NCBI GenBank assembly: GCA_002104945.1
Contig: MCFH01000009.1
Span: 186,001 to 250,000, forward strand
DNA length: 64,000 bases
Direction of reading: 5' to 3'
From: Piromyces finnis finn
Taxonomy: Eukaryota > Fungi > Neocallimastigomycota
In this document: piece after piece, positions 31,153 to 54,462 of the stretch
How positions within the stretch are numbered: position 1 is the stretch's first letter
How the letters are laid out: the number at the start of each line of letters is the position of its first letter
Made by a program: the position numbers and the translations under genes
The notes under the pieces: generated by a model
What the model was told of the DNA's origin: nothing
What the model saw: only the letters and a program-made list of their open reading frames with translations
Database searches by the model: none

Positions 31153-34100
31153 ATGTCATATTATTATAAAAAAAAAAAAAGTAAAATTATAAATGTCAAT
31201 AATATATTAATCATGCAATCTGATTGTGATAGTATAATTTCCTTTTATAAAGGAAGTAATTTAAAATTCAGTAATGAAAATTGTTGTAATTGGTCAAATA
31301 TTCAATGTAAAAATAATAAAATCTACTTATTGTAAGTTATTTATTTATTATATTATTAATATTATTTTCATTTATCAATGTTCTTATTTTTTATAAATGA
31401 TTAACAAAATAAATTTCCCTAATTCACAACAGTCAATATATCAATGATAATAATGAAAAAATTGATTTTTCGACATTTCCAATTCTAGGAGAGCTTACTG
31501 ATTTGTATATTATTATTTTTATACTTAAATATAAATAAATAAATAAATAAGTAAATAAATAAATATTTATTAATTAAACAAAATATTTTAATATATTTAT
31601 AATTAAGAATAATTCAAGGAAAATACTTGTTAGGAGGTTCAGTCCCCACTATATTTTTTAGTCAGCCAAAATTGATGCGATTGTAAGTATTATGAAATAT
31701 TGATTACAATGTCATAATTCATATTTATTTTGATTACAATATTAATACCAAATTAAATTTAGAATATTAGATAACAGCAATATATGGGAAATACCAAATA
31801 TTATAAATTCTGCCAGCTCTAGTTCAATAGAGTCGATGTAAGAAATATGATATAAATTAAAGTGATAATAATAGTATAACTTACATCTTTTTTTTTTTAA
31901 TTATTAAATATTTAGATCCTTAAAAAATAATCTTTTGACGGCATTTCCATATTTTTTACGTAATATGCCTCATTTAAAATCATTGTATGTAAAAGAAAAA
32001 AAAATTAATATTATTACTCTATAAATAATTAATCTTATTATATATTTATAAAATAACTAGGAATATTAGTGAAAATAAAATAAATGAGGAATTAACAAAT
32101 GAAATTAGTCAATTTCCATCTCTAGAAATATTGTAATTATAAAAAATAAAATCATTATATATTATAAATTTAAAATTGGCTTTATATTTAAATTATTATA
32201 TCTTATAAATTAGGAATATATCATCCAACTTTATGACTGGTAGTATACCAGAAATCCCATCAAGTTTAAAAGAATTGTATGAATTAACAAATAGATTGTT
32301 TATAATACTTTAATATAAGCGTATATCATATACTAATAATTTTTTTTTTATTTTATACAATATTATAGATATATTGATAACAATCAATTCTCCTCCCTTA
32401 AATTTTCTTATTCTCAATCTCCAAATTTAGAAATATTGTAATATATCAAATAATTATATATTTAATTAATTGGATAAAAATAAAGGGAATATTAATTGTT
32501 TCATTTCAACATTTATATTTAAATTAGTTCTGGAAATAATAATAAACTTGGTAATGACGCCTTTAAGCTTCTTACAGAATTCCAAAATATGAAAAATATG
32601 TAAGAAATATAATTTCGTTAAATAATAAAAAAGATAAAATATATTGATTTTTTTCTATTTATTTTGTAATGGTTAAACAATAGTTCATTAGAAAATACGG
32701 AGTTGACAGGTATTCCATCATCAATAAACAATTTAAGTAAACTGAGATATTTGTATGTATTTATTATTTTTTAAAACTTGTAATATATTTACAATATAAT
32801 AATAATTAATAATTAATTAATAATAATGTTTTATTCTAAATGCATATAATTCAAGGTCATTAAAAAATAATGATATAGATCAATTACCAGAAGAGTTTAA
32901 TGATATAAAATATTTAGAAGAATTGTAATTATTGTTTATCTTTTTTTATAATTATTTTTATTTTTAAAATAATTAAAATATTGATGAAAATCTAAATTAT
33001 TTAATTTAAAAATTTTATTTAGAAATTTATCCGGAAATTCTAAATTAAAAGGAAAAATTAAGAGTGGTGCTGCCATCAGCAAATGTTATTTAAGTCATAC
33101 CGCCGATGTTTGTGTTGAATATAAAAATATATGTAGTTTCAATGATTCTCAAAATATTTGTGGACAAAGTAAAGGCTCTTCTTTACTTTCGAATATGGCA
33201 GTTGTTTTTCTATCCTTAGCCATTATATCATTGCTCATTTATATAATACATTTTCTTTATAAATTAAAGAAAGAAAAGAATAGAATGAAAAACTTTTCTC
33301 GTATGTCAAAAAGTACAAAAGGAAATAGCGAAAGTTTTGCTAATGACAGTTTAGATGTTAATTGTCAATCTTTAAGAAGTAAAACAAGTAAAGAAGTAAT
33401 TAATACTATTAATGAAGCAGTAAGTCATTTAAATTCTAAGAGTGATTCTAAAACTAGAAGCGCTGAAATTGCATTTTCTAATGGTATGAAAATAGTAGGT
33501 TCAGCAAATGAAGCCTTCAATTTGGCAAAAGATAGAAATCAAAAACCTCAGTTAAAAGAAATATTTAAAGATATTGATAGTCTTGATGGTGAAATTACAG
33601 ATCATTTATTTGTAAATCTAGAACGTGATGATAATCAAATCTCAAATAATAGTAATGATAATAATTTTAAAAACAATAATCAATATCCTTCTTTAAGTCG
33701 ATCTGTAATATCAAATCCCTGTACTTCATCTGAAGCTATAATACCACAAATAATAAATTATTCATTACCCAGAAATAATAATATAAGGAATATTATGCTT
33801 ACAAATACTTCAAATGCTTTAATGAATAATAATAATATGAATATGAACATGAATATAAATAATGGAATTACAAATAATAATAATAATAATAATTTAGATT
33901 TCAGAAATAATAGTAAAACTAACAATAATCATTATAGCAAAGTGAATTCAAGTACTCCTTATAACTCAATTGAGATTAAGACTAAGTTACTTCCCCGTTC
34001 TATATTGGCTAATTCTTCAGAATTTATTAATAATAATAATATGAACATTCTTAAATTGAATGCAAGAGATACTGTTATGCCCGGTGTTCGTAAAGATAAT

Positions 34101-34895
34101 GCTAATGAATATACAAATAAGATCAACAATATAAATTCTGAAATAAATACTCAATCTCAACTCTATAAGAATGGAATATTGAATAATACTAATTGCTTTA
34201 ACCTTGAAAATTTTAATAATTATAATGTAATAAATAATACTACTGGAATTAATAGTAATGGTCAAATTCATTTATTAAATTCTACCATTGTTAATCCAAA
34301 TAATAATCAAACTAGCCCTATTTTAGTAGCTCTACCAATATTACCTTATAATACTAATAGTCTAAATAGAAATCAAACAACTAATTTAAATAAATTACCA
34401 CTTAACAATACAATTGCCTTGAAAGAACTTCCCTCAAATCAAAATCAACCATTAAATGATATATATAGAAATAGGTCTATCCAAGAGAATATTCCATCAC
34501 TAACTATAAATTCCTCAAATAATTCAATAATCCCCATAAATCATAATTTATCTATTAGTAGTAAATCTAATTCAATTACTACTGATACAAATATTACAAA
34601 CTCAAATTCTATTTCCCTTTCATCCTTTAGCGTAAATAACTCATCTTTTAGTGATGAGGAACTTTCTAAAAATATACTATTTCAAAATCCATCCCCTATA
34701 AAAATTAAAAAAAATAACAGTAGTATAAGGAAAGGTTATTCAAATTCTTTAAAACCAATTTTTAACCATAAAGGCAGCTTAAAAAGTGTTGGAGACAAAA
34801 GTGTTAATTCAGGAAATATTAGTAGTAGTTTTGATCTTCATATAGATTCAATGGAATTGGATGATATTCTTAATGAGATTAATTTATCAAAATAA
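31153..34895 (+). CDS. LRR receptor-like protein 1: Cys cap, 10 one-repeat exons, Cys-rich juxtamembrane, single TM, long Asn/Ser-rich tail, no kinase
   Basis: Cap CCNWSNIQC. Internal exons 31433-31504, 31608-31682, 31763-31837, 31916-31984, 32061-32132, 32214-32276, 32369-32437, 32528-32599, 32684-32752 and 32856-32924 each encode one LRR (e.g. ISLKNNLLTAFPYFLRNMPHLKSL). TM AVVFLSLAIISLLIYIIHFL, then KLKKEK. Start codon uncertain. Confidence 0.88.
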
Positions 34896-35639
34896 AATTA
34901 GTATTTATATAATTTTTAATCTATAAAGTTCAATCATTATATTTTTTTTTAATAATTAAACTTTAAAATAATTTATACATTTAATTCAAGAGTAATTAAA
35001 TTCTTTTTTTATTTTTTTTTATCCATTTTTCATAAAAGAAATAATTTACTATTACGAAAATTTTATTATAAACAAATAAACAAATAAACAACAACAACAA
35101 TAACAATAATAGCAACAATAATAATAATTATATAAAAAGTTTAAAAAAACAAAAAAGTAAAAAAAAAAAGAATAACAACAAAAAAAATTACAATAATATA
35201 CTTGATTTTTTATAATTTTATGACTTTTAAAAAAAAAGTAGAAATTAAATAAAAAAAAAAAAAAGGGAAACAAAATAAAAATAAAATAGCAATAAAAAAG
35301 AAAAGGCAAAGAAAATTAGTAGAAGAAAATATAAAACTATTTTCTTATTAAATAATTACTTTGCATTTATTTATTAATAATAATAAAAATTATATTTTTA
35401 TGAGAATAAAAGTTTTTATATGTATAAAATATAAAATAATAAATAAATTATAAATAAAAAATAAATTAAAATGAACAAAATTATAATTAATTTGGCTTAA
35501 TTTACATTTGTGTGATTTTTCCTTAATTTGTTTTTGTACTTTTTTATTATAAGAATAAAGTTTTTTTTTTTTCTTTTTCTTTTTTTTTTTTTTATTGATC
35601 CATACAGTGATATATTAATCAATATAACATACCTTGAAT

Positions 35640-36030
35640 CCTCTTGGGAACGTGCCCTCATTTATTTAATAAATGAAGTTTTTCAAGGGGCTCTACTCAT
35701 GCTCATGGTACTGAGAGAGTAGAAAGAATTAAATCCAAGTATTGCGCAATGGATGCTTGGTTAGTCTTTATTTGGAAATATTATTAGGACTAAGCTCATG
35801 GCATTGAGCGACCCTCTTTTCAAGGTCGCCGTGTGCAACAGCAAAAGAGGGTTGCCTTTTCTGAAAAAATAGTAAGAAAAGACAATAAATTTCGAGTTGA
35901 GTTGGTAACCTGAGTGACAGTTGTTATACCATTTTCTCATTACATATTTAACTAATCTTAAATATTAGTTACCTTTACCACTTAAATAACATAATATTAG
36001 TTTACAAACTTTCTTCTTCTTGTATTTATT
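35640..36030 (+). mobile_element. Solo 5' end of non-LTR family B (shared leader 35640-35811 plus B-specific UTR)
   Basis: Colinear with the reverse complement of 38440-38814; no ORF follows. Confidence 0.8.
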
Positions 36031-36127
36031 TAATTTGAAATATTACATTATATTAAGTGATAATATATATTGATATAATAAATAATAAATAATAATAATA
36101 ATAATAATATATATATATATATAAAAT

Positions 36128-38814
36128 AAAATAATTATTAAAGTTGCATAAAAGTTCAATAAACTCTGCAACTCGTATTGTGTGGGATTGGTCCCTACCT
36201 AATAAATTAAATGAAATAAAAAAGAGAAGTAACATCAGGTATGATAGTGTGGTGTCCACTAAACTCTCTCATGAGCTCATAATGTTTTCATTCAAAGAAA
36301 TACTAACATTGAACCCTGTGTACGGAACATTAGGAATGTTCCTTTGCCATATCGGTACGACGTCGGAGCTCTTGATTACATTAGGTGTTTTACTAAACCT
36401 ATCAAAAAGTAGCTTCCTAGAGCTACTAATAATAAGGATTGTTTTAGTAAGAAAAGACGCGAGACCTTCTACATATAAACATGAGACCCCGATGAACTGT
36501 AAAGCTGTTCATTCAAATGTCTTTGTTCCGCCTTATCGATTTGTAGCTCATCATAAGCTAAAGTTCCACCAAGAAGGAACGTAAAAATATAGTTATAAAT
36601 TGTTTTTCTTACTTCCGTTTCGGGGAGTAAGTATGTGATGAATTGATTATTGTATTTATTTTGAAAAAGGGTAAAAAGATTGTCAAGAAAGCTAAGTGAA
36701 GAAGCTCTGTATTCAGAAAATGTAGAACATTCTAATATCCAATAGTAAAAAGATTGTTCGTCATAACCACAACATGGACAGACACGAGGGCAGTCAGGAG
36801 TAACTCTATTACTGGCAATAGCAATTCGGGTGGTATTTTCATAACCGCATCGAATACGAATAATCCAGGTAATTCCTAAATTTAAGTGAGGTTTATTGAG
36901 ACCGATATGCATTAGGCGATTTGAATTAAGAAATTTGTTGTTAGTATATCTGAGGGCTTTACTTCCATTATTTAGGCTACTATTATTCCAATAATGTTCT
37001 CTAATAACTTCAGTACTTTTAATATTTATTTTCATAAGCTTCTTATGTAGTGAACAAGATTCTTTGGTCCAAGAGTAATGAGACATGGGAGGAATAGATC
37101 GGACGAGACCTTTAATAATACAATTTGATTTTCTCCATTTAACAAAACATTTCACTTGTTGCGCAGCACAAATACCTGAAAGGGTAGGAATCTTCATATC
37201 TCTTGTCAAAGCATACAGATTAATAAATGAATTTCGTTCAAAAACAAAATCTTTGCTATTAAAACTTTTATTGTGAAAGCTATTGACACTCCATAAAACA
37301 GCAGGTATTGATAAGAGATTGGACTCTTCTAGTTCTATTTTTGTTGGAACCAAGTAAAGGAGCATAATAAGAGACTTTGCTTAAAATATAAGAATGAATT
37401 ATTATTAGAGATTATTGAGAAAATCAAAATATTTACCACGTATACCTAATTTATATAACTTTGTAAGGATATTAAAAATAGGAACTGAGTCGTATGCTTT
37501 TTTAAGGTATAGAAAGGCAAATATTAATGGATTTTCCTTTAAATTTTCTTCTTTGACAGATTTCTCTAATGGAAATAAATAAGCTAATGCATTCTTCTTT
37601 ATTACAAAAACCAAATTGCTCAGTTCTGATAAAATTATGAAAAAGAATGTAATAGTATAAAAAATAATAATAGTAAAGTGGATATATTGAATAGTTATTG
37701 GATTATTTGTCAAACAATGTTTTACTTTTACTTGGAGAATAAAAAATATACTAAGTTGCTGAAAAACTTAGTATTTACTTTATTGAAGACTTTAAATTGG
37801 AAATAAATTTATATTCTGTCACTTTGAATTTCTGAGATATACCTGTAATTTGTAAACTTTATTTTTTTATTAGATTAATACTGTTTGTTGGTTGACTATT
37901 GTAATATGTTGATTCTGATTGTTGGATTTAAATAATCATAAATGTTAATTTATGATGAAGAAAAAGTAGTAAAAAGGTGAGAAGTTATTATACCATATTG
38001 CAAAGGATAAAGGATATAAAGAATTAAATAAAGAACATAATAAATTCTCAAAATAAAATTGAAACAAGAGTAGTATATATAATAAAAAACTAGGATACTC
38101 GATTTTCCAGAATTTAAGCTTTATTGTTAAAATAAAAAAAAAGAGAGTTTAATATTTACCATGAAATGAAATTCTACAATATACCTAAAAAATTATAAAA
38201 ATATAGAATAGAGATAGAAAAAGTGTACAAAAGAATGTTAGTAGAAAGAGATTCCTTGGAAAATTTAGAGTTTCAAAAAAAAAAAAAAATAAAATAAAAT
38301 AAAAAGTAAATATAGTGAAAAATAAAAAGATTAAATATGATTAAAAGTAATGATAGCCGCAATAATTACAAACTTGATTAACAATTAAACTATATAAGCT
38401 ATGAAAAATAAAAAATAAAATCAAATATATTCTTAAAACAACAATTAATACTACAGAATCAGAAAATTTGTAAATTAATATTATGTTATTTAAGTGGTAA
38501 AAATAACCAATATTTAAGATTAGTCGAAGATGTAAGGAAATGTGGTATAACAACTATCACTCAGGTTATCAACTCAAATCGAAACTTATTGTTTCAGAAA
38601 AGACAACTCTCTTTCGCTGTTACGCACTGCAACCATGAAAGAGGGTCGCTCAGTACCATGGGCTTAGTCCTAATAGTATTTCCCAATAAAAACTAACCAA
38701 GCACCCATTGCACAATACTTGGATTTATTTCTACTCTCTTAGTACCATGAGCATGAGTAAAACTCCTTGAGAAATTACATTTATTAAATAAATGAAGGCA
38801 CGTTCCCAAGGGGG
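36128..38814 (-). mobile_element. Non-LTR retrotransposon family B, internally deleted and frameshifted, both termini present
   Basis: Leader at 38646-38814. RT pieces EQFGFCNKEEC... and LKKAYDSVPIFNIL (37405-37713) join directly to the post-RT region. C-terminal CPRVCPCC...WILEC zinc-knuckle region. 3' end followed by TTTTA units. Confidence 0.88.
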
Positions 38815-39589
38815 AAACACATTTCCTTTTCATATTATTAATTTAAATAGATATCAAAAATAACTAACAATAATTAATGTTTAAAGGGAATTTATTTTCA
38901 TGCTTTTTATAAAATAATAATTAATTATATTGAATTCACATATAAACTCTTTTTATATTAATGTTACTAAAAATTAAATATCTATTAGTATTTCTAATAT
39001 TTTTTTATTTTATACATCTTTATTTTTTTTTTTTTTTTGTAAAGTATTATATTATAAATCAAATATTTCTTTTTATTGTTTAAACAACAAATTTTATTCT
39101 ATTTTTCTGCAGTTCAAATGAGTAATTATTTAAATATAATAATTGTCTTAATAATAAAAGCAATAAATCTAATTATTATCTTTTAAATATATTATTATTT
39201 ATATTTTTAATCATCAGATTATTAATAATTTATCTAAATAGATAAATTAATACTATCATTAATACCAAAACTAAGACTACTAAGAAGGCTACTACAAATA
39301 TCAATAAAGACTACTCTTTCATTATTAAATTTAAAAACGAAAAATAAAAAAGTTGATAATCCATCTAAAAATTAATACACCTTTTTCTTCAAAAATAAAA
39401 TCAACCTTTGACTCACCTTCACTTATACCAATCATTAAATCCAATAAGTACCTCCATTAATGAATACAGTGAATTTTATTATTATTATTATTATTATTAA
39501 TTTTTTATTATTAATTGTATTGTATTCATTACTTTTTATATTGATTTTATTAATATTATTTTGTATAAATATTCTATCATTCTATCGAG

Positions 39590-39890
39590 TTTTCTTAATA
39601 TTAATTGTAATCTAGTGGTTGTTCACCAAATTGATCATATTTATCATCATCACCTTTAGAGGTTTTATTTAGTAATGCTTCTTTAATGGCTAACATTTTT
39701 TTACGAATCCTAACTTGTAAGTCAGCTTGATCTTTATTAATTTGATTATTTTTTTTCTTGTTATAATAATTCTTTATTTAATATAGAAGATAAAACTACT
39801 GATAGTACAGCAACAGGAAAGGAAAGTTATATGGTATAATATTATTTTCATTGCTATTATTAAATGTTGTGTCAATACCCATGTTATCTT
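39590..39890 (-). pseudogene. Pseudogenic fragment of the C-terminal tail of the 42262-45017 LRR-TM family
   Basis: Aligns by eye to NMGINIPFNN...VAVPPV...KELLLQENNIQID..QAxLxxxIRKxMLA..., with an in-frame TAA and frameshifts. Confidence 0.8.
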
Positions 39891-41309
39891 TATTATATGA
39901 TATATTAATATTTACATTAATATAAATTAGTAGAATTAAAGAAATATCTTTCCTTGGCTTATTTTATCCTTTTTTTTTTTAACAAAATATTTAAAATATC
40001 ATGATGATACTAATACTTTAATATATATCATTACTATAATATGTTTTTTTTTTTCACTTTATAGTAGTATAGCTATATGAATATTTGACAAAGAATAAAA
40101 GTACAACACAATATTTTAAATTCATTACTAACTACCAAAAAAGTTTTAAACTCTTAATTATATAATAAATATAATATATTTATTAATATCCTCAAAAAAT
40201 TATCGATTAATTCTAGAAACTATTCAAACAGACTACTAGTAGATGTTAATTTACTCTTCAAGAAATTATGGTAGTAAAGAAGTACAAAATTTCTCTCTCT
40301 CTTTTTTTTTTTCACTTTACATTGAAACGTATCTTTAACCTAAAGATAATTTAACCCTTTTAAATTATGATACAATACAACACAAAGTGTTTGTTTCTTT
40401 ATAATTTTTTAAATAATTTTTATTCAATGTGTAATATAAAACATTAATGATTTTATAAAGAATAATTAATAAATAAAATAAAATAAAATTACTTTATTCC
40501 TTTATATTACATTTTAAAGAAAAGATATTGAAATAATTATATAAATATATACTAAACTAAAGCATAATTGTACATTTAACCATTTCTATGATTATGATAT
40601 TTCTAATATTCATTTTCATTTATTTAATTATTATAAATCTTTAACAAACACTATTATTAGTATTTTATTAATAAGATATAAATTTTGGTTTTATTTTAAT
40701 CTTTGTCATTCTAAAGTATTGAGAAGAGTCTAGATTAACGTAATAAAAGAATTGCTTATTTGAGGCTTGACATATACAAATATAATGTATAATACAAATC
40801 TATTAAATGATATAAAAAAATAAAAAAAAAGAAAATGATGAATGGTTACACTAAAAAAAAAAAGAAATTAAATATCAATTTATATTATTTAAAGTTGCTT
40901 ATTAATTTCATAAAATAGTCAATTGCCAATATATATAAACAATATAAAAATAGAATGATACAATAGAATAATATAATATAATATATGAATAACTCTGAAA
41001 TTTTGTTTAAAGTGGATGGATTCTAAAACCAATATAAAACTTAATGGAAAACTTATTTTCTACTATAAACTTTAATTATAATAAAAAAAAGTATTTTTTA
41101 TGTATTTTATATATTCATAGAATTAAAAAGTTTGTTATAATTTATCATAAAACATTAATTACTTTTAAACACTGAAATATATTAAAATTTACAAAAACTA
41201 TAAATAATTAAATAATTCCTTGGACATTTAATTCAAATTATTATTATTATTATTATTATAGTTTAAAAAATTTAATTATTTCTATTTAATTATAAAAATT
41301 ATTGCCTAT

Positions 41310-42261: not shown

Positions 42262-45017
42262 TTAAAATTGGGTGTAGGATGGTGGTGGTTCATCAAATTC
42301 ATCATTCTTATTATTATTACCTTTAGATTTCTTATCAAGTAACATTTCTTCAGTTGCTAACATTTCTTTACGAATCTTGGCATGTAATTTAGCTTTATCT
42401 TCATCAATTTGGATATTATTTTCTTGTAATAATAATTCCTTCTTTGATATAGAAGATGATGAAGCTACTGGTGGTACAGCAACTGAAAAGTTATATTGCA
42501 TTGAATTATTTTCATTCATATATCCCATATTATTATTAAATGGAATATTAATACCCATATTACCATTATTATTAAATGGAACATTAACACCCATATTACC
42601 ATTATTATTAAATGGAACATTAACACCCATATTACCATTATTATTAAATGGAACATTAACACCCATATTACCATTATTATTAAATGGAACATTAACACCC
42701 ATGTTACCATTATTATTAAATGGAATATTAACACCCATGTTACCATTATTATTAAATGGAACATTAACACCCATGTTACCATTATTAAATGGAGCATTAA
42801 TACCTGCATTATTCATTAATGGAGATGAAACAACTATACTATTATCCATACCATAATTAATACTTTGTTGTGATGTATTAATGTCATTTAGGTTATTAAA
42901 AGAATTATTTATTGGTGAATTATAATTTCCATTAGCACCATTGTTATTTAATTCCGTATTAATGTTTGCTTGAGAAATATTAGCAATATCATTATAATGA
43001 TCGTTATTACTTGTATTAATTTCTTCTGGCTTGTTTTCAGATTTATTAAGATTATATTCATTTATAATTTTTTTACTTTCTTCATTTGTACTATAAGCAT
43101 AAGTTGCATTATTATCGTCTTTAATATATTCTGGTCCTTTTTTATTTTTATTGATAAAAAAGAAAACTAAAATTGAAATAGTTAAAACAACTGCAACTAC
43201 TATTGATATAATGATAGCTTTATTAAGCTTTGGTTTATCATCATCATTATTTTCTTCTTGTTTTTTTTCATAAACCTTATCTAATAAAACTTCATTATTT
43301 TTTTCATACTCTGGTGTACAATCAAGTTTATCAACATCTTCACTACAAACCCCTTTATTACGAAAACAAAATTTACCAGGATCTAATGAACAAGTTTTTA
43401 ATGTAGTACCGTTAAATCCAAAAACAACATTTTGAAAACGATTTTTTGAAAAATCACTATTATTAAATAAATAAATAAATAAATAATAACTAAATAAGAA
43501 TTTTATATAGTTATTATAAATTTAATTAAATTTAAAGCATACATCATTTCCAAAGATTTTATTTCATATAATTCATTTGGTAAAACTGTGATTTTATTAT
43601 CGGTTACATTTCTAATAGAAAATATTATATAACCATATAAATATTTATTTTAATATATATTTCAAAAATTAACATTAATTATTAATACTTACAATTTTTT
43701 CAAATTTGATAACTTGTTTATTGATTTTGGTATTTTTTCAACTCCATTTCCTGTAAAAAATCTTTATTAAACATGTTTTTAGTAATGTATTAAAAATACT
43801 ATTATAAATGATATATTCAAAACAAATTATATTTACAAATTTTTTAAATTCATATTAGAATTTATAATATCTTCAAACAATGAATCTGGATCCTTAAAAA
43901 CATTATCTCCAACATAACTTTTTTTCAAATATATATAAATGATGAATTGTTAAATAATTTATTAATATTAAATATCTAATTTATATATTGTTATAAATCA
44001 CAAATAAATAATACAGGCTTTCCAAGTTTGGAGGAAATGAAGTAATTTTATCAACTTCACTGTTATATAAATTCCTATAAGTTGAACAATAAATATTATT
44101 CATAATAGTAGCAATAATATATTAGATTGTAATTTCTGTTAAAAAGTTAAAATATAGCCAATTTTTTTAATACTAACAAAACAGCAAGTTTTTTATTTTC
44201 ATTCAAACCTTCAATTTTTTCCACTCTAATATTTTTTATCCAACTACATTTAATAAGTAATATATCATTAGAATTAATTCAAACAATAAAATAATAAATT
44301 TTTAACTTTATCATTACATCTTTTCAAGATCATGTAAAATTCCAATATTTGGAAATTCTTTTATAGTTTTATAATTATCTACGATTTGTCTATTTGTTAT
44401 ATTTTATATTAACAAATAAATATTATTATTGAATATTAAAATATTTTTAAATAATTAAATAATTAATTATTTTATTTACAAAATTTTCAATTTTTGGAAT
44501 TTATCAAATATTTTTGGAAAATCTGCATTTCTATTAAAAGCTAATGATCTTTATATTTAATATAAATATTAGTTTTTTTTTAATTGTAATGAATTATATT
44601 ATTATATTTAAATTTATATATTTTTTTCTTACAAATTTTGAAGATTTGAAAAACTTTTAAGGGGATCAAGATTTATATCTGCTTGTATATTATAAAATTC
44701 TCTATATAATAAATGAAAGTAAGTATAAGAAATAATAATAAAATCTATTAAAATTAATTGAATATATTTTATACTTACAATTGAATAATTTCATTATTTA
44801 CAACATTATACCGTAAATTGCTTCTAATACAATAACCATTAATATGACAGTATTTATCAGGACTATCGGGTGGTACTGCTATATTCAAATTATTTAAATT
44901 ATGTATATTTATAAATTCTTTAAGCTCATTACATTGTTTCTCTAACAAAGTTTCACCCTGAGCTATAATAGAATATCCGAAAATTAATATACAAAATAAA
45001 TATAAATGAAATTTCAT
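42262..45017 (-). CDS. LRR receptor-like protein 2: signal peptide, 8 one-repeat exons, TM, Asn/Gly/Met repeat tail, C-terminal PPxY
   Basis: MKFHLYLFCILIFGYSIIAQG signal. Phase-2 exons of 69, 69, 72, 66, 60, 81, 69 and 69 bp. Cys-rich TCSLDPGKFCFRNKGVC, TM AIIISIVVAVVLTISILVFFFI, ends DEPPPSYTQF*. Confidence 0.9.
42530..42790 (-). repeat. Coding 36-bp tandem repeat (~7 x NNNGNMGVNVPF)
   Basis: Visible directly in the DNA and in track ORF 42262-42849. Confidence 0.93.
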
Positions 45018-45230
45018 AATTTTTTATTTTTCCTTAATTTATTTATTTTTATATATATAACTTTTTTTTTTTTTTTTTTTATTTTTTTAACTTTTTATAA
45101 TGAATTTTCATTTTTATATTAAAAAAATTTATTATTTATTTTTGCAACCAATGATGTTATTTTTTAAAATTATTAGAAACTGATTGATACAGTTTACTAC
45201 TATTTTAAATTTATTAATCATTGACCGCAG

Positions 45231-45598
45231 AAATAAAATAAAATAAAATAAAATAAAATAAAATAAAATAAAATAAAATAAAATAAAATAAAATAAAATA
45301 AAATAAAATAAAATAAAATAAAATAAAATAAAATAAAATAAAATAAAATAAAATAAAATAAAATAAAATAAAATAAATAAAATAAAATAAAATAAAATAA
45401 AATAAAATAAAATAAAATAAAATAAAATAAAATAAAATAAAATAAAATAAAATAAAATAAAATAAAATAAAATAAAATAAAATAAATAAAATAAAATAAA
45501 ATAAAATAAAATAAAATAAAATAAAATAAAATAAAATAAAATAAAATAAAATAAAATAAAATAAAATAAAATAAAATAAAATAAAATAAAATAAAATA
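45231..45598. repeat. (AAAAT)n array (~70 units) abutting a family-B 3' end
   Basis: Pentanucleotide array immediately adjacent to the family-B terminus at ~45599. Confidence 0.95.
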
Positions 45599-46010
45599 AT
45601 TATTTAAGTTGCATAAAGATAAAAGTTTAATGCATTTTGTACTGCGATTGTTTAGGATTGATTCCTACTTAATAAATTAAATAAAATAAAAAAGAAAAGT
45701 AACATCAGGTATGATAGTATGATTTCCGTTAAACTCCCATGAGTTCATAAGGTTATCATTGGAAAAAATACTAACATTGAAACTTTTATATAGAACATTT
45801 GTAATATTTCTTTGATATGTCGATAAGACGTTACATCGGCGTTCTTGATTACGTTAGTGCTTTATTAAATCTATCAAAAAGTAGTTTCATTGTGCTACTA
45901 ATGATAGGAATTGTTTTAGTAAGAAAATTCTCAAGACCCTCTATATGGAACATGAACCTCTGATGAACTATAAAGCTGTTCATTCAAATGCCTTTGTCCC
46001 GCCTTATCAA
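45599..46010 (-). mobile_element. Family B LINE 3' portion (left half of a copy split by a family-A insertion)
   Basis: Colinear with 36130-36540; breaks at ...ccgccttatcaa. Confidence 0.85.
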
Positions 46011-46011
46011 C

Positions 46012-49000
46012 TTTTTTTTTTTTTTTTTTTTAACGGCATCAAATATTTTTACACTTTATTATTAATTTAATTAAAATTATAATACATGTTATAAAAAAAA
46101 TAAAAATAAAAAATAAAAAAAAATATGTTTTAATAAATACAAATGAATAAAAATTGGGTATAATGTATTCTAGTAATTTTAATTAAAGTAAGAAAGCCAC
46201 TACTAAAGTATAATAATTGTATTTGACTTCCAATGGAACACCGAGCCAAAGATCAAAATTTTATCATGGAAAAAAATTATGATCGCCATTGGTTGCGCTG
46301 GCCCTCCTGGCCTGTCTTACTGTTTCTTCAGCATTGACGCTCTTGGCTGTTGCTTCAAACCTTTTAAACATTGACCATTGCTGGCCAATAGCAAAAGGCA
46401 TGATTTTGGTTAGAAGTTCCGCGGTTACCGTCAAGAATGGTGTTCCTTCGTTAGTGCCAGATTGAATCTCACACTTGCCAAGTTCTTTCCCTTGAATTGT
46501 AATTGATATTGTTAAAAATTCTTCCCCCAAGAAGGAATTTAAATATTTTACTGCACACACTAGAATAATCATACACATTAATATTCACCGGATTATTAGA
46601 ACTATTGTTATTATTGCTATTATTAACTAAATTACTATCTAAATTAGAATTATTATCTTCACTATAGTTATCTTTACTATTGTTACTATTACTATTGTAA
46701 TTATTATTATTACTATTATTATTATTATTATTATTATTAATATTATTACTATCTCTACTGATATTAACATTTTCATTATTATTGATCGGACTGTTGGAAT
46801 TACGTTGACTGAAAAAATTTAATAGCTGGACTATGGAATCATAATATTTAATACGGATATCTTTAAATGTTGGACAATCTAATAACCAATGCTTAATACT
46901 TTGATCTCCACTCTTGCAACATGGACAGTAGCTAGGACAAACTGGGTCAACAAATTTAGCAGCTTTTGCAACTCTAGCATCCAACTTGTATCCGCTTCTT
47001 GCTTTCAATAGCCAGTAGAAACCATAGGCAAACTCTGGATACTCATATCATAATTTAGTAAAATCTTTAGTTTCTATAAATTTATTATCATCATAATATT
47101 GTGCTTTGATTGAATTTCCTCTGAGATCTTTCCAATAAAAGTTTTTAACTGCTTTAATATCTCCATGTTTCTTTAGTTTTTTATCTAGTGTCCTACTTGA
47201 TTTGCGCCATGTATATTTTCTAAATTTAGGAATGTAATTGACAAGGTGTGAGATAATACAATTCGAGTTTTTCCATTTGTTAAAACATCTAACCTGAGCT
47301 AACGCACATTTGGCTGACAATGGAGGAACATTCAAATCTTTTGAGATAGAGTATAGAGATATAAACGATACAGCTTTATAAACTCCGGCAACCCATCGTA
47401 TTCCTTTGTTAACATGCTTCTGAGCAATTCTAGACCTAACTTTGTTGGATCCAAGTAATGGTGCAAAGTATGAAACTCTGCTGATCACTTGGGAGTTAAG
47501 TACTAGCTTTTTGAAAGGAATAGAAATATTAGGATTTCTTAAGAATTTACTGACTGAAAAGAGTCCTTTCAAAACCTTGTTATTAGGAGCTTTAATTACT
47601 AGTTTAAGGGACAAACTCTTATCAAATGGAACACCAAGATATGTGTAGCAATAAGTAGTTGGAATGGGTTTTCCTGCTAAGTAAAATGTTGGATCTTTCT
47701 TGTTCTGATTTTCTATTAATTCAGGACGAATCACCATCGCTGAACATTTTTGGATACCAAATTCCATTTCATTATACAAAGCCCATTCATTAACTCTTTT
47801 TAGCATCTTTTTTAAGCATCTTCTTGATGGAGCATAAATAACTTTATCATTTGCAAAAAGACCACCACAGCATCGAGTGCCTCCTAAACTTGACTTCGAG
47901 GTCTTCACACTCTTTAAAAATATCATTAATAAAGAGATTAAAAAGAATAGGTAAAAATGAGCAACCTTGACGGACTCCTTTCTTCACATCAAAAGATTTC
48001 TAGAATTGTCCATCTAATTTGACATTAGCCTTAGATGTTAAATATTACTGATTGGGACTGAATCGTATGCTTTCCTGAGATCCAAAAAGACCAAATATGT
48101 CTCTTTATTATCTAATTGACGTCTACGACATATTTCTTGGATTGAAATGAAAAGACTGACACTTTCTTCCTTTTTTCGAAAACCAAATTGTTCAGGTCTA
48201 ATGAGATTATTCTTAAGACCATATTCTGAAATTCTAGTGGTGACAATTTTTGAAATTAACTTAATACCATTATTGATAATTGATATATCTCGGTAGTTAT
48301 CACAATCTGTCAAATCTCCCTTCTTAGGAATAGAAACAATACTGGATTCATTCCATGAGCTAACACTATCTCTCTTTTCGAGATTCCACCATTGGTGTTC
48401 CAACTAAGACAAAAAGAAAAGTTATCAGGTTTGTTGGATGTGGAAGAATCATTGCTATTATTATTAAAGTCATCATTAATAATGGATAATGTGTCAAAGG
48501 AATTAGATGAACTATTATTAGATGGCTGTGAAACTGACGAACTATCAACTATTGAATAGAGTTGATAGAACTATTAGAATTAATTGTTGAATGTTAAGGT
48601 TGAAATTGTGTTTGTTGTAGATCTAGGATACTTTCATGTTGGAAATCTTGTTGAAGATCGGATTGTTGATGGAATTGTTGATGGAATTGTTGAATTGAAT
48701 GTTGATGTTAACACTAATAACTAAATTAAATTTATCCTTCAGAATAACCTCGAGTTTTTCCCATAGCATACTAACTGACCATGATCGAATACCACGGATA
48801 AAGAAGGTGCTAATATCATCTAAGGGGATACCATAAAACAGGGTACTACGTCTGATATAGTTCTTATCTTTAATATAAAGGACTGACATGATGATTAATT
48901 ATAATTAAAAATATTGAATATAAAATAAATACTAATAAAAATTATAAATATAATGTATATGGGAAAAAATTCTGTCTCTCTCTTCTTAAAAAAGTACTGG

Positions 49001-49605
49001 ATGGTACAAGAATTGTTTCAATGCTTTGATTAAAGTTTCTTTTCTAGTTTTGGTTTGTTGTTAGTAAATTCGATTCGTTTTTTGACACTAAATTTATTTG
49101 ACTTTAATTATCTTTAGATTGTTAAAATTTTGAATCAAGAATGCCGACACTAGAAAGATTGTGAATAGTATTTTTACATGATGTACAGTGAATCAATCTC
49201 TTACAGGAAACAATACAACAATAGCTACATGAATATAAAAATACAATGCAAATGCTAAAGTTGCCTACATTGGATTCTTACAAGAGAAGAGTAGTACTAC
49301 ATGAATACATGAATAAAAGAAAAAATACAGCAACAAAATGTATTCCTCTTAAATTAAATACTATACAAACTTACCTGAACACCAAACATTCAACTTCTCC
49401 ATCAAATACTTAAATTCGATGGATAAATGTTTTTTAATCGCTCAGTATCATGAGCTTAGTCCTTATATTTTTCCCTATAAAGACTAACCAAGCATCCATT
49501 GCGCAATACTTGGATTTATTTCTACTCTCTCAGTACCATGAACATGAGTAGAGCCCTTTGAGAAACTTCATTTATTAAATAAATGAAGGCACGTTCCCAA
49601 GAGGG
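46012..49605 (-). mobile_element. Non-LTR retrotransposon family A, internally deleted, with 5' leader and poly(A) tail
   Basis: Leader 49438-49605. ORF start 48889 matches the 62487 ORF. RT motifs WNESSIVSIPKKGD, EQFGFRKKE, FLDLRKAYDSVP, GVRQGC, GGLFAND (FADD decayed), YTYLGVPF. CCHC CPCC...HWLLDC. 20-nt poly(T) on + at 46012-46031 is poly(A) in element sense. Confidence 0.92.
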
Positions 49606-49795
49606 TATAATCAATTTGTGGCTCATCATTAGTAAAGTTCCAAGTTATAAATGATTTTTCTTTCTTCCATTTCTGTAAGTGATAAAATAATTCTTATATT
49701 AATTATAGGAAAGAGCAAATATACCATCAAGAAAGCTAAATCAAGAAATTCTATATTTAGAGAATGCAGAACACTTTTAATATCCATCATTAAGT
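49606..49795 (-). mobile_element. Family B LINE fragment (right half of the split copy)
   Basis: taatcaatttgtggctcatcat... continues where 46010 stopped when compared with 36535-36750. Confidence 0.8.
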
Positions 49796-50101
49796 TTTTC
49801 TTTTAAAAATATCAAATATTAAAATAATTATTATTATTTTTTAAATAACTAAAAGATTACATAAACATTACAATATTAAACTATATTTACTATTAATTTT
49901 TTTTTTTTTTGTTAATTTAGTATTTTTATTTATTTATTAATTAATTATTTTATTACAAGTAATTTTATTATTTATTATTATATATTGTATTAACAATATA
50001 TGCTTTTTTATTTATTTTATTTTGCTTACTTTATCTATTTTTTTTATTAAAATATTATAGTTTTAAATTATTTAATTTTTTTGTAAATATTTTTTTAAAT
50101 T

Positions 50102-50857
50102 TTATTTTAAATTTCTAACAATGCATTTACGTTGCTTTTTCTTTTCAATAGTTTTTTGTTCATTTATTTGAACATCTTCCTTTTCAGCAGTTGGTTCATT
50201 ATTGTCAATTTCATCATCTGAATTAACAATCTCACTTTCATCATCATTTTTAGATGAAGTTGGTTTTGTGGTAGATTCAGTAGTTTGGGATGGAGCTGGT
50301 TCAGTAGTACCAGTTGGTTCAGTAGTTTGAGTTTGAGCTGGTTCAGTAGTACTAGTTGGTTCAGTAGTTTGAGTTTGAGCTGGTTCAGTAGTACTAGTTG
50401 GTTCAGTAGTTTGAGTTTGAGCTGGTTCAGTAGTACTAGTTGGTTCAGTAGTTTGAGTTTGAGCTGGTTCAGTAGTACTAGTTGATTCAGTAGTTTGAGT
50501 TTGAGCTGGTTCAGTAGTACTAGTTGATTCAGTAGTTTGAGTTTGAGCTGGTTCAGTAGTACTAGTTGATTCAGTAGTTTGAGTTTGAGCTGGTTCAGTA
50601 GTACTAGTTGATTCAGTAGTTTGAGTTGGAACTAGTTCGGTAGTTGTAGTTGTGGTTGTAGTTGTGGTTGTAGTTGTGGTTGTAGTTGTGGTTGTAGTTG
50701 TGGTTGTAGTTGTGGTTAAAAGTGGGGGTACTGTTTTTTCATCTTCAATGTTGATAGAAGATTGAGGATTATCTAAAAATGGATTAGTTTCTTGACAATT
50801 AACAACAGCAATACAGAAAAAAACAAATAAAAGTAATAAACTTAAATTTAACTTCAT
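50102..50857 (-). CDS. Secreted Thr-rich mucin-like protein with 14-aa repeats (TTESTSTTEPAQTQ) and basic C-terminus KKQRKCIVRNLK
   Basis: Signal peptide MKLNLSLLLLFVFFCIAVVNC, poly-Thr run, ~8 x 42-bp repeat, intronless, no catalytic domain seen. Confidence 0.85.
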   Translation of the reverse strand: MKLNLSLLLLFVFFCIAVVNCQETNPFLDNPQSSINIEDEKTVPPLLTTTTTTTTTTTTTTTTTTTTTTTTTTELVPTQTTESTSTTEPAQTQTTESTSTTEPAQTQTTESTSTTEPAQTQTTESTSTTEPAQTQTTEPTSTTEPAQTQTTEPTSTTEPAQTQTTEPTSTTEPAQTQTTEPTGTTEPAPSQTTESTTKPTSSKNDDESEIVNSDDEIDNNEPTAEKEDVQINEQKTIEKKKQRKCIVRNLK

Positions 50858-51544
50858 TTCTAAATTAAAAATAATATAGTTATTGTTATTAAAAATTTTA
50901 ATTATTTATTTTTTATATTTATTATAAGTTTTTATTTTATTTCTTAACCAAATAATTCATTTTTACCTTTTAAACAATTCTTTATTTTTTATTTATTTTT
51001 TTATTTATTTTTATTTTTTATTTTTTATTTTTTATTTTGTAAAAAAAAAGGTTTATGAATTTATTCTTTTTTATATAATTTTTTTAATATATAAATATGT
51101 AATATAATAAATTAAAATTTTAAATTAAAAATTTTATTATAGTTACACATAGCTTTATTATTCATAGAAATTTTTGTATAATAAAAATAATTTACTTGAA
51201 TGTGGCTTGAATATACATAATTGAAGAAGATTACATCCTTTTTATGAATAGAAACTATTTATTATAAAATAAAAATAAAAATAATAATAGTATTGTATTA
51301 AATTAACTATAAATAAGATTTATATGAATAACTACATTTCTATTAAAATATTTGAACTTCAGGAAGTAAAAGTAATAATTACAATTTATAGATACTATAT
51401 AACTAAAAAATAAAACATCAATTAAATTAACATCAAAAATAATAATTATTTTTATAATAAAATCAAAAGTTTTTACTAGAAAAAATAACAATATATCTCA
51501 TTATTTTAGTTCTAAATTAGTATTTATTCAATCTTCCAATAATA

Positions 51545-51750
51545 ATAAAATAAAATAAAATAAAATAAAATAAAATAAAATAAAATAAAATAAAATAAAA
51601 TAAAATAAAATAAAATAAAATAAAATAAAATAAAATAAAATAAAATAAAATAAAATAAAATAAAATAAAATAAAATAAAATAAAATAAAATAAAATAAAA
51701 TAAAATAAAATAAAATAAAATAAAATAAAATAAAATAAAATAAAATAAAA
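51545..51750. repeat. (AAAAT)n array (~40 units)
   Basis: Perfect pentamer array; source of spurious FILFY ORFs. No LINE end adjacent. Confidence 0.95.
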
Positions 51751-51989
51751 AGCATATCATATTTTTTATATTTTAAAGAATAATATTTTTTCATCTTAAT
51801 AATACGTAACTTTTACATTTTTAAATATCAATAATGCATTATTACAAATATTTTCTTTTATTTTTTGCTTTTTTTTTCTTTTTACAATTAAATTTTATTT
51901 AACTTTTATTTTCACTTTAAATTATATATTATATAAATTGCGTATTAAAAGACTTAATATATACTTATAACTATTAAATTATACAATCA

Positions 51990-54462
51990 TTACAATTCTG
52001 AATATGGAGGTAAATTATTATTAGGATCATTTTGATTATTGTTTTGGTTTATACTAAATTTTTCTAAATTCATTTTTTCTTTTAATATTTTCTTTTTGAG
52101 TTTATCATCAAACTCTTTAATATCTTTTCCATCTGTGGTTGGAATAATATTATCACTACTACTACTACCAGCCAAGTATGAATTATTCATCGAATAATTA
52201 AGCATATTTATAGGATATAAGTTGATTAATGTTTGACCATTCATTATATTATTTGGCATATTAGGATTTATATATGTAGATGATGGAATTTGTAATATAT
52301 TTGTTTCATTACCCTTAAACATTGGATTAGTTACATTAATAGAAGTAATATTATTATTAAAACCAGAATTAGTAAATGGACTTTGCATTTCCATTGAAGT
52401 AGCTATAGTTTGATTATTTATTGTTGAGGAAGATGCCATTGGAGTAGTACTACTACTAATCATTTGATTTCCATTATTATTATTAGATGCTTGTAATGTT
52501 AAATTTCTCAGAGGATGAACTAAGGAAGGATCATTTCCAACAAGTATTGGACTTTGTACTGCATTATTAATTATAAATGATCCATTTGAATTATTACTTA
52601 AATTTCTTTGAATATTTGAAATTGAATTAGAAGTAAGTGAAGATACTGCTTCTTTATGACTAGTAAATGAATTGTCTATTATTGTTTGTGTGTCATTACC
52701 AACATTAAAAGATTGATTTGTTTTATTTTCTTCAGCATTCTTTTTATTACTAAGTGAATCCTTATAGTAATTTTCATTTTTAACTGTTGGTGATATAATA
52801 ATATCTGCCTCTCTTGACTTTTTGCTTTTTTTATTTACTTTATACATCCAAATAAAACCAACAATACATAAAAGAATTACCGAAACAATTGAAAATATTG
52901 TTAATATCCTATTCTTATTATTTGGTCTTAATTTATTTATTAATTCTGATGAACATTCTTTATAATTGTTTAATTCTGGAACTATATTAGCACAAGTATT
53001 CTTTTCATAACAAGCTATTTTAGTATTTTCGAAATTACAATTTTCGATATATCCCGATTCCTTGAAATTAATAACACTCATTTTCAATTGAATATTATTT
53101 GAAAGATTCCTAAAAAACCATATTAAAAACAAAATCGTTTGAAAATAATATATTAAAAATTTTAGTATTTTGATTTATATAGTAACTTATATTATTAATT
53201 TGTTTGTTGTTATATTATATAATTTACAAAAATAAATTATTTACAAGTTATTTAAGTTGTTCATTCCTTTCATCATATCGTCTGGGACTTTTTTTAAATT
53301 ATTATTTGAAATATCCCTATAAAATAATATTAGTAAATTATTATTATTTTATTTATAACACTTGATATTATTTCAATTTAAAAAAAAAAAAAGTTATAAA
53401 AATGTGTGTATATGTGAAAATAGTATAAATGAAAAACTTACAAAGTCTCAATATTTTTAAATTTGTGGATTTCTTCAGTTAATTCTGTAATTTCATTTTT
53501 AGACAAAATTCTTTATATATTTTTTTTTTCATTAATTAAAATGTTTTTGAATATGAATATAATCAAAAAAAGTGCTATATTTATATTCTCATACTTACAA
53601 TTGTTTTAAATTCACTAATGAGCTAAACTGATATGGAACTTCAGTTAGTGACCCATTGACAATTTCTCTAAGTTTATTTAAAGGTAAATTATTAAAAAAA
53701 TAATAATAATAAATCATCGATTTTATATTTTATTATTACATTGTACTTATTTTTGAATTTGCATCACTTGAAAAATTTGAAGGGATGTTCTTAATTACTG
53801 AATTTCTAATAATTCTTAATTTTAAAATAAAATTAATTTTAGAACATTTATTTCTCCTATTTTATTATAATACTATACAATTCATTTGTATATACAATTG
53901 AGTTAATTCCGGATAATTCTGAGAATTTAATAATCTTGAAGGAAATTCTTGATTATTAAAATTTATATTAAATATTTTTCTACATTTAATAATATTTTAA
54001 TATAAATTTATAAATAAAAATAATTAATTTTAGGTTTAAATATATATATATATTGTATTAACTATATTTTTATCAACAATATTTTGATATTACATTGTTT
54101 TCAAGCTATGAAAAGATGGAAAATCATTAAAATTATTAAAATTTAAGTTTTCATCATTATTTAATCTAATATTTCTACATATGGAAAAAAAAAATAGAAA
54201 AGTTAAATAATTAAGTATAAATTATTCAATTTATATAATAAACAAATATATTATTTATTTCTTACAAAGAAGTTATATTATTATCTTGGCAATTCATATA
54301 GATTTTATCGTTACAATTGTAATGAGAAACAAAAACATCATAAAGAGCTCCTTTAATGTAATTGCTTAAAAAGTTATGAAGTTTTTCAATGTCATTCTCT
54401 TCCGCTGAACATAATACTAATAATATATTCAAAAAAACTACATAAAACTTTAAAATATTCAT
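51990..54462 (-). CDS. LRR receptor-like protein 3: signal peptide, 6 one-repeat exons, TM, Asn/Ser-rich tail, C-terminal LPPY
   Basis: MNILKFYVVFLNILLVLCSA signal. Phase-2 exons, e.g. LEIVNGSLTEVPYQFSSLVNLKQL and LDISNNNLKKVPDDMMKGMNNLNNL. Cys-rich CNFENTKIACYEKNTC, TM ILTIFSIVSVILLCIVGFIWM, ends NLPPYSEL*. Confidence 0.9.

Follow-up and report, generated by a model that had tools for sequence, protein, structure and literature searches.

A syntenic trio of kinase-less LRR-TM genes with symmetric one-repeat exons in the gut fungus Piromyces finnis is probably conserved rather than combinatorial

Little is understood of how gut fungi perceive plant fibre, bacteria and methanogens. To our knowledge, fungi are usually described as being without cell-surface LRR receptors, and LRR pattern receptors were reportedly noted as missing from fungi by Soanes and Talbot in 2010. 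LRR-TM genes that form a syntenic trio conserved in anaerobic gut fungi are therefore a useful entry point. Three such genes, here called A, B and C, lie within the 64,000-nucleotide stretch of the P. finnis genome that was analysed (the window). Their layout of one LRR per exon raises the question of whether the exons serve a variable repertoire. The original prediction was that they do, in a diversifying non-self or surface-sensing system whose symmetric exons are skipped, duplicated and swapped to yield combinatorial ectodomains.

Exon chains rebuilt from the sequence reproduced the three kinase-less LRR-TM genes that had been proposed, with 10 (A), 8 (B) and 6 (C) internal LRR exons. All 27 introns are bounded by GT-AG, are 72-135 nt long and fall in phase 2. 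The codon that they split, foreseen as one and the same hydrophobic codon of the LRR, is always L, I or F and corresponds to L4, position 4 of LxxLxLxxN; LxxLxIxxN fits all 27 junction-anchored repeats. Exon lengths had been given as 60-81 bp and multiples of 3; divisibility by 3 holds for every internal exon (24/24), but the sizes extend from 60 to 84 nt, one exon of gene C having 84 nt. Each protein displays N-cap cysteines, the expected Cys-rich stalk, with four Cys, and single TM segment, and a tail that is N/S-rich, as its description as low-complexity implied, but not purely so, conserved motifs being present. No kinase was found in P0019, in P0001 or in the terminal exons of the three genes (3/3) by Pfam scans. 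From the positive-inside flanks of the TM segments, the N-glycosylation sequons and the invariant ectodomain cysteines we infer a topology in which a capped LRR solenoid would lie N-terminal of the membrane, followed by the 4-Cys stalk, a TM helix and a long, disordered, kinase-less cytoplasmic tail.

The rebuilt model of gene A (31213-34895, plus strand) matches the public protein P0019 (898 aa) exactly. Exon 1 (31153..31331) encodes an N-cap with four Cys, the public start being the ATG at 31213 (exon 31213-31331). It is followed at 31433..32924 by an array of ten single-LRR exons, all phase 2-2 (31433-31504, 31608-31682, 31763-31837, 31916-31984, 32061-32132, 32214-32276, 32369-32437, 32528-32599, 32684-32752 and 32856-32924), whose lengths are in order 72, 75, 75, 69, 72, 63, 69, 72, 69 and 69 nt. 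The terminal exon (33023..34895) encodes the last LRR, the 4-Cys stalk, the TM segment (about 33177-33266) and the cytoplasmic tail, which is N/S-rich, spans 545 aa and has conserved segments near the membrane and at the C-terminus; a membrane-proximal helix is strongly conserved in A-type tails, and gene A has no PPxY motif. The start codon of the orthologues has its homologue in an in-frame ATG further upstream, at 31153, and 23 codons separate this ATG from a DCD motif, as many as in the N. californiae sequence L002. The signal-peptide core in this stretch has decayed, the maximum 8-residue hydropathy at the N-terminus being 1.4 in gene A versus about 3.0 in B and C. Piromyces-type gene A sequences show no convincing signal peptide, and the surface topology of gene A is therefore uncertain. 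The signal peptide of this gene was lost in the Piromyces lineage.

Gene B (45017-42262, minus strand) was likewise rebuilt as a model identical to a public protein, the 662-aa P0001. A signal peptide and a Cys-bearing N-cap are encoded by exon 1 (44779..45017), and eight single-LRR exons, all phase 2-2, occupy 43543..44701 (44701-44633, 44548-44480, 44389-44318, 44243-44178, 44074-44015, 43917-43837, 43761-43693 and 43611-43543; 69, 69, 72, 66, 60, 81, 69 and 69 nt). The terminal exon (43456-42262) adds the last LRR, the 4-Cys stalk, the TM segment (43144-43230) and the tail. In the tail the juxtamembrane YIKDDNNATYAY is conserved, a 36-nt unit is repeated in tandem (42493-42859), and a C-terminal helix is accompanied by the motif PPSY (42274-42285), three residues from the stop codon. 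A decayed relic of a B-type cytoplasmic tail was located at 39607..39918 on the same strand. It is 39% identical to residues 552-659 of B, contains stop codons and has a degenerated PPxY; no LRR exon relics were found upstream of it.

For gene C (54462-51990, minus strand) the public 383-aa model P0025 proved to be truncated. The public protein (ORX55283.1) lacks both signal peptide and cap, as well as about six LRRs. In the corrected model, exon 1 (54266..54462), absent from the public one, encodes a signal peptide and a Cys-bearing N-cap, and six single-LRR exons, all phase 2-2 and aligned by the homologues P0028, P0030, P0031 and P0037, lie at 53245..54174 (54174-54094, 53979-53896, 53814-53740, 53667-53599, 53510-53442 and 53316-53245; 81, 84, 75, 69, 69 and 72 nt). 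The last junction is also used by P0025. The terminal exon (53109-51990) encodes the last LRR, the 4-Cys stalk, the TM segment (52833-52916) and an N/S-rich tail with a conserved helix and the motif LPPY (52002-52013) three residues before the stop. Exon peptides and homologues alone assign gene C to the LRR superfamily.

For A and B this assignment comes from the Pfam family LRR_8, with scores of 49.1 bits (A) and 36.1 bits (B) against a curated cut-off of 27. An AF2 model of residues 1-420 of A predicts a curved beta-strand/helix solenoid (mean pLDDT 80.7, pTM 0.71). Foldseek comparison of this model with the PDB returned 473 matches with E at or below 0.001, and among the matches listed (roughly 50 of the 473) all are LRR proteins. 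The top structural neighbours are the plant proteins TMM, RLP23-type RLPs, PGIP and the ERECTA family; LRRTM2, LINGO-1 and Leptospira LRR proteins are also among the neighbours. The caps had been likened to plant LRR N-caps; the cysteines are indeed present, but LRRNT_2 (PF08263) matched none of the caps, whether in A, B and C or in their homologues, with E allowed to rise to 10. The LRRNT and LRRCT caps and the TIR domain of animal LRR-TM proteins and Toll-like receptors were likewise not found in Pfam scans. The LxGxIP signature that follows the beta strand in the plant-specific 24-residue repeat occurs in 2-3 of the 27 repeats, in gene A (LLGGSVP, MTGSIP), the other repeats being of mixed type.

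Gene A has orthologues with an equal repeat count in Piromyces sp. E2, Orpinomyces/Pecoramyces and Neocallimastix, and its N. californiae orthologue, as read from genomic DNA, retains all 10 LRR exons in phase 2. That orthologue lies together with a B-like and a C-like gene within about 32 kb of N. californiae contig MCOG01000002.1, and the linkage of the trio predates the Piromyces-Neocallimastix split. Between P. finnis and Neocallimastix the number of LRR exons differs in the B (8 versus about 10) and C (6 versus 7) lineages, so that ectodomain length is not fixed in these two; exons gained or lost in the ordinary course of evolution account for this difference of one or two. The few relatives of the stalk-TM-tail module that could be named all come from anaerobic gut fungi, and the module is so far known from this group only. 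Diversifying selection on the concave LRR face had been expected. For the one sequence pair compared, gene A and the cDNA L003, dN/dS is 0.24 over the LRRs, with 0.12 at concave positions and 0.27 elsewhere; this is purifying selection, an outcome named beforehand as speaking against the expectation. Mean pairwise identity among five full-length gene A orthologues is 0.63 at concave positions versus 0.60 elsewhere.

We consider it probable that A, B and C are anciently diverged single-copy genes for kinase-less single-pass LRR membrane proteins, conserved and not combinatorial. Each gene would make one constitutive ectodomain under purifying selection. The one-repeat phase-2 exons may be the inherited footprint of an ancient duplication of exon-plus-intron cassettes, their symmetry permitting occasional in-frame gain or loss of repeats over evolutionary time. 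The concave face of the LRRs may bind a conserved extracellular ligand or partner, and any signalling would require a partner protein.

At the C-terminus of B and C a conserved helix is joined by a PPxY-type motif (PPSY and LPPY, respectively), and this C-terminal motif is kept in all B- and C-type homologues (P0002, P0026, P0028, P0029, P0030 and P0037). The genome also contains a 3xWW-HECT gene (G000:C112:1679053-1681496). The conserved tail ends suggest, at the level of sequence, that a Rsp5/NEDD4-type ubiquitin ligase would control B and C: the helix and PPxY would recruit the WW-HECT enzyme and lead to endocytosis and turnover. The conserved PPxY tail provides a concrete handle for testing. 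Alternatively, the LRRs might simply attach the fungus, be it to plant fibre, partner microbes or its own wall proteins, and pass no signal inward, PPxY serving membrane-protein quality control only. The lack of a kinase or other signalling domain in the three proteins fits such an adhesive or scaffolding role, as do the largely disordered, N/S-rich tails and the presence among the structural neighbours of LRRTM2 and LINGO-1, which are adhesion molecules, and of PGIP, an inhibitor. We nevertheless regard it as unlikely, in view of tail segments conserved beyond PPxY, namely the B-type juxtamembrane YIKDDNNATYAY and the A-type membrane-proximal helix, which indicate specific cytoplasmic partners. 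Somewhat more doubtful still is the idea that the B- and C-type proteins form the sensing arm of a receptor system found only in gut fungi, in which ligand-triggered, Rsp5-type ubiquitin-dependent endocytosis replaces kinase signalling. If true, it would give fungi a system resembling LRR pattern receptors, in which the number of repeats could drift from one species to another thanks to the symmetric exons.

The combinatorial ectodomains of the original prediction now appear very improbable. Several features do speak for them: any skip would preserve the reading frame, since each internal exon is symmetric (phase 2-2) and divisible by 3; one or two LRR exons differ between genera in the B and C lineages; and the dead B-type copy documents gene birth and death. 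Brown-alga ROCO genes of the same layout are, moreover, reported as shuffled and alternatively spliced (PMC11378527). The P. finnis genes, however, bear no trace of shuffling or of recent exon duplication, one of several observed outcomes that had been named beforehand as refuting the prediction. Each is single-copy, only about 5-6 loci in the genome share the stalk-TM module, and pairwise identity among A, B and C is 26-31%. When the 24 exon-plus-intron cassettes were compared all against all by blastn, both within and between genes, nothing but AT-rich words of 13-26 nt matched, and LRR exon peptides are no more similar within genes than between them. The synteny is old, the exon count of gene A is identical in Neocallimastix and its concave face has an omega of about 0.12. 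As for splicing, several samples yielded intronless cDNA contigs of relatives that are full-length and carry every exon, and shorter variants are 5' truncations only. Internally exon-skipped forms were absent from the assembled cDNA contigs of relatives; assemblies drop rare isoforms, and low-level in-frame exon skipping may therefore occur in A, B and C. A layout of one repeat per symmetric exon thus need not by itself mean a variable repertoire, and in these genes it accompanies strict conservation. Many genes of gut fungi were gained by horizontal transfer, but an origin of these ectodomains in plants or gut bacteria is highly improbable: plant LRR ectodomains and Leptospira LRR proteins are among the best structural matches of A and word-search matches to B are LRR proteins of archaea, bacteria and plants, yet the latter are generic (26-33% identity over protein parts), the former reach TM-scores of only 0.2-0.5 at 13-22% identity, the genes are intron-rich with intron positions conserved across genera, the plant LRRNT_2 cap is undetectable and the stalk-TM-tail module is found only in gut fungi. 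In practical terms, the preferred reading of a conserved trio comes with a corrected model for gene C, a marked B-type pseudogene relic and the signal-peptide loss spotted in gene A.

Among known systems, plant LRR-RLPs and LRR ectodomains resemble A, B and C in having a signal peptide, a Cys-capped solenoid, a Cys stalk and one TM segment but no kinase, and ERECTA-type genes are said, after Torii et al. in 1996, also to carry a single LRR per exon. Unlike the plant proteins, A, B and C have caps without Pfam LRRNT_2, GxIP in only 2-3 of the 27 repeats, 13-22% identity to their structural matches and a family confined to gut fungi; their tails are long (286-545 aa) with PPxY or other conserved motifs, whereas those of plant RLPs are short. 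The PY-motif membrane cargo of Rsp5/NEDD4 ubiquitin ligases, and their adaptors, share with B and C a conserved [LP]PxY, placed in these two at the extreme C-terminus of the cytoplasmic tail. Gene A differs in having no such motif, and for B and C the likeness is one of sequence, consisting of the motif and the WW-HECT gene.

The exon layout itself has closer parallels elsewhere. LRR-ROCO genes of the brown algae Ectocarpus and Saccharina have one LRR per ~72-bp exon and introns all in phase 2, in common with A, B and C; their exons are near-identical, shuffled and alternatively spliced, with the concave face under positive selection (PMC11378527). They encode cytosolic LRR-ROC-COR GTPases, whereas A, B and C would be membrane-anchored, with old and dissimilar exons and, in gene A, a constrained concave face. 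[quoted passage not shown] The arrays are similar in kind to those of A, B and C, but the Tetrahymena genes number thousands, are young and species-specific, and have exons that measure exactly 90 bp, in contrast to A, B and C, which are three in number, old, single-copy and syntenic, with exon lengths of 60-84 bp. The LH, FSH and TSH receptor genes, according to passages in PMC11378527, have similar-sized phase-2 LRR exons that are spliced constitutively into one conserved binding domain. Their LRR ectodomain is thus built like those of A, B and C from similar-sized phase-2 exons, but is fused to a seven-TM GPCR, where A, B and C have just one TM segment, followed by a disordered tail.

The window corresponds to C222:186001-250000 of the genome (G000), and public databases list its proteins under Piromyces finnis, an anaerobic gut fungus. 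It is extremely AT-rich (GC 9–30%), and the three kinase-less LRR-TM genes that it contains, referred to here as A, B and C, were rebuilt from the raw sequence by listing all AG...GT-bounded open segments and then chaining them. Gene A (31213–34895, + strand) comprises 12 exons, ten of which are internal and 63–75 nt long; gene B (45017–42262, − strand) has 10 exons, with eight internal ones of 60–81 nt, and gene C (54462–51990, − strand) has 8 exons, with six internal ones of 69–84 nt. The length of every internal exon is a multiple of three (24/24), and all 27 introns (72–135 nt) are of the GT-AG type, lie in phase 2 and split a codon for L, I or F. Alignment of the 27 junctions gave the consensus LxxL|xIxxN, in which the intron interrupts the LRR motif at position four. 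The one-LRR-per-exon, phase-2 layout put forward for the three genes in the original prediction was thus borne out. Many other LRR arrays in the same genome lie in long uninterrupted frames of 500–2300 aa (e.g. C57:761394-772818 and C163:116438-125708), so that the one-repeat-per-exon layout belongs to particular LRR families and not to all.

The rebuilt A protein was identical, letter for letter, to the public 898-aa protein P0019, the rebuilt B protein to the public 662-aa 'L domain-like protein' P0001, and the last junction of C is also used by its public protein P0025 (ORX55283.1, 383 aa); the gene models are therefore not circular. P0025 is a truncated model: its first residue is an internal Met of exon 7, and signal peptide, N-cap and about six LRRs are absent from it; homologues from Neocallimastix, Anaeromyces and one transcript contig align across the missing part. 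Database searches with C were carried out exon by exon, its joined spliced model being analysed in local scripts only, and those with A and B were run through the public protein ids, which correspond to the spliced models. A search for public contigs encoding P0001 found none. A reading of the genes as pseudogenes or annotation artefacts was ruled out by their intact frames, orthologues and cDNAs.

The predicted receptor-like anatomy, namely a Cys cap, an LRR solenoid, a stalk and one TM segment with no kinase, was supported. LRR_8 scored above the Pfam cut-off in A and B, N-cap cysteines were found in each of the three proteins, and a four-Cys stalk of the form C-x7-9-C-x5-6-C-x7-12-C is common to them. 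Each also contains a single hydrophobic segment, flanked by more basic sequence on its C-terminal than on its N-terminal side; the ectodomain carries three to seven N-glycosylation sequons, and the N- and S-rich tail is 286–545 residues long. Pfam scans of A, B and C detected no kinase, TIR, LRRNT, LRRCT or plant LRRNT_2 domain, and gave sub-threshold noise only on caps and tails. Since LRRNT_2 was not detectable, the proposed likeness of the N-cap to plant LRR caps is a visual one. An AlphaFold model of residues 1–420 of A, with six orthologues as input, had a mean pLDDT of 80.7; its N-cap is helical, its solenoid regular and its C-cap rich in beta structure, and it includes a long TM helix. 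Its nearest solved folds were plant LRR ectodomains (PSKR, PGIP, MIK2, ERL/TMM), followed with nearly equal scores by Leptospira LRR proteins, LRRTM2 and SHOC2 (TM-scores of 0.2–0.5 at 13–22% identity); as modelled, the fold of A is that of a generic LRR solenoid. A word search with the B ectodomain returned generic LRR proteins only, from archaea, bacteria and plants.

Based on the flanks of its TM segment, the N-terminus of A is predicted to lie outside the cell. A classic signal peptide stands at the start of the A orthologues in Neocallimastix and Orpinomyces. The homologous ATG of P. finnis, at 31153, has an equal number of codons after it, but the hydrophobic core is decayed. This region (31153–31225, + strand, in the window; L002:1501-1580 at the genomic locus of the N. 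californiae A orthologue; also covered by transcript contigs L004–L007) is decayed in Piromyces-type sequences, and in a Piromyces-like relative, represented by mRNA contigs of four samples, there is an in-frame stop two codons before the Met. All eight ectodomain cysteines of A are invariant despite the decay of the signal peptide.

The original prediction had gone further and proposed a diversifying combinatorial system built from interchangeable one-LRR exons. That the three genes are recent tandem duplicates was ruled out by the 26–31% identity between their LRR regions. When the 24 exon-plus-intron cassettes were compared all against all by blastn, the only matches were AT-rich words of 13–26 nt, and the similarity between exon peptides was no higher within a gene than between genes. 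These comparisons point to no recent duplication or exchange, and the expected exon shuffling among paralogues was therefore not seen. A, B and C are each single-copy in the 56-Mb genome, a stalk-TM profile search of which retrieved the three genes and only two or three further loci. One-to-one relatives of A were identified in Piromyces sp. E2, Orpinomyces/Pecoramyces, Neocallimastix californiae and metatranscriptome contigs; the full-length ones have an equal repeat count and are 54–71% identical over the first 420 residues. When the N. californiae A protein (P0023) was mapped to its locus L002 by seed-and-extend threading, the same ten single-LRR exons were recovered, cut in the same phase.

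In N. californiae, an interval of about 32 kb on contig MCOG01000002.1 holds the A orthologue together with a B-like gene and the C-like gene coding for P0028, with their order kept (L008:2578-5999, L008:10001-13038 and L002:1501-5918, L008 being a further stretch of this contig; about 1.047–1.079 Mb). The product of the B-like gene matches B at 57% identity across the TM and juxtamembrane stretch and at 50% in the C-terminal 48 residues. The trio is thus syntenic in the two species, with a difference in orientation: the three genes share one strand in N. californiae, but in P. finnis A lies on the strand opposite to B and C. Among five full-length A orthologues, the mean pairwise identity was 0.63 at concave positions versus 0.60 in the rest of the repeat. 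Comparison of A with its closest cDNA, contig L003 (Nei-Gojobori, one pair), put dN/dS in the LRR region at 0.24 overall, with 0.12 at concave and 0.27 at other positions. Within the LRR region of A, constraint is strongest on the putative binding face, and positive selection was not seen there. With single-copy genes, old synteny, constraint and conserved A exons, the evidence speaks against a diversifying array.

Full-length A-type proteins are encoded by contigs that have no introns and stem from metatranscriptomes or RNA runs (L003, L004–L007), one identical 990-aa A-type product being encoded by ten contigs in all, and a B-type protein is encoded by the intronless contig L001. One C-type transcript cluster comprises seven length variants; all are truncated or partial, and none was found to have an internal exon-sized deletion. 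Since assemblies drop rare forms, the assembled transcripts of the relatives show that the full-length isoform is dominant; minor isoforms may exist. On an evolutionary time scale, the number of repeats has not stayed constant in the B and C lineages, two of the three: the C-like gene of N. californiae has seven internal LRR exons versus six in P. finnis C, about ten candidate exons in its B-like gene compare with eight in P. finnis B, and elsewhere among C-type homologues the excess reaches three or four repeats. A decayed B-type tail relic lies between A and B (39607–39918, − strand); it is 39% identical to the B tail, contains stop codons and has a degenerated PPxY. A search upstream of it for relic LRR exons found none. 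Such change amounts to ordinary birth-and-death, with an exon gained or lost now and then.

Between the genes lie two diverged copies of a single retroelement family, which looks DIRS-like. The first (35620–38830, between A and B) has inverted terminal repeats of about 90–400 nt (35640–35819 versus 38638–38813); the second (45600–49780, between B and C) has terminal and internal segments in common with the first, an RVT_1 fragment (48041–48403, − strand) and broken ORFs. Also between B and C, a 251-aa ORF (50102–50857, − strand) without a Pfam match may code for a secreted mucin-like protein, as suggested by its hydrophobic N-terminus and long Thr/Ser-rich tandem repeats. Two (AAAAT)n microsatellites were found, one of about 370 nt just upstream of the B start (45233–45600) and one of about 200 nt just downstream of the C stop (51545–51748).

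The tails, predicted to be of low complexity, are indeed N/S-rich but contain conserved segments and so are more than that. B, C and all their homologues have a conserved basic/acidic C-terminal helix of the form KLxxKIxKE, followed by about 15–20 N/D-rich residues and then by [LP]PxY two to four residues from the stop. The juxtamembrane sequence YIKDDNNATYAY is common to B-type proteins. The B tail also includes about eight tandem copies of a 36-nt repeat (42493–42859, − strand; core 95–98% identical) coding for the 12-residue unit NNNGNMGVNVPF, which is a recent expansion. Gene A has no PY motif and has its own conserved membrane-proximal helix and acidic C-terminus. The [LP]PxY motif is a classical ligand of the WW domains in Rsp5/NEDD4 HECT ligases. 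A gene of this type, in which three WW-domain exons precede the HECT exons, is present in P. finnis (locus L009; G000:C112:1679053-1681496, + strand) and is a candidate reader of the PPxY tails of B and C. A complex prediction for one of its WW domains with the last 45 residues of B (score 0.07, mark 0.34) speaks neither for nor against this pairing. In our best reading, A, B and C would be constitutive surface proteins binding a conserved ligand, as receptors or adhesins, and the surface level of B and C would be set by ubiquitin-dependent endocytosis; ligand, topology and connection to the ligase are inferred. Through the PPxY tail, the mechanism becomes testable.

An exhaustive search with the stalk-TM-tail exon of C retrieved 11 proteins among 1.84 billion representatives; the named ones are all from Neocallimastigomycota (Piromyces, Neocallimastix, Anaeromyces, Pecoramyces) and the remainder from metagenome or RNA assemblies. 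The relatives of A are likewise from Neocallimastigomycota where named and otherwise from metagenome or RNA assemblies. Kinase-less LRR-TM receptor-like proteins are not expected in fungi, which lends the three genes moderate interest. In the literature searched on LRR and Neocallimastigomycota, the family is barely mentioned. An 'LRR receptor-like' gene was down-regulated in Pecoramyces co-cultured with a methanogen (PMC6414434), and LRR-RLK-like orthogroups were reported in chytrids in a 2026 paper (PMC13618815), among whose references is a report of 2010 on the absence of LRR pattern receptors from Fungi. Overall, A, B and C are uncharacterised kinase-less LRR-TM receptor-like proteins, of a kind and with an exon layout that are already known. 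Plant ERECTA-type genes are described as having the phase-2 one-repeat-per-exon layout. As in A, B and C, it is also found in brown-alga ROCO and vertebrate gonadotropin-receptor genes (PMC11378527), and in Tetrahymena it takes the form of 90-bp exons (PMC6564038).
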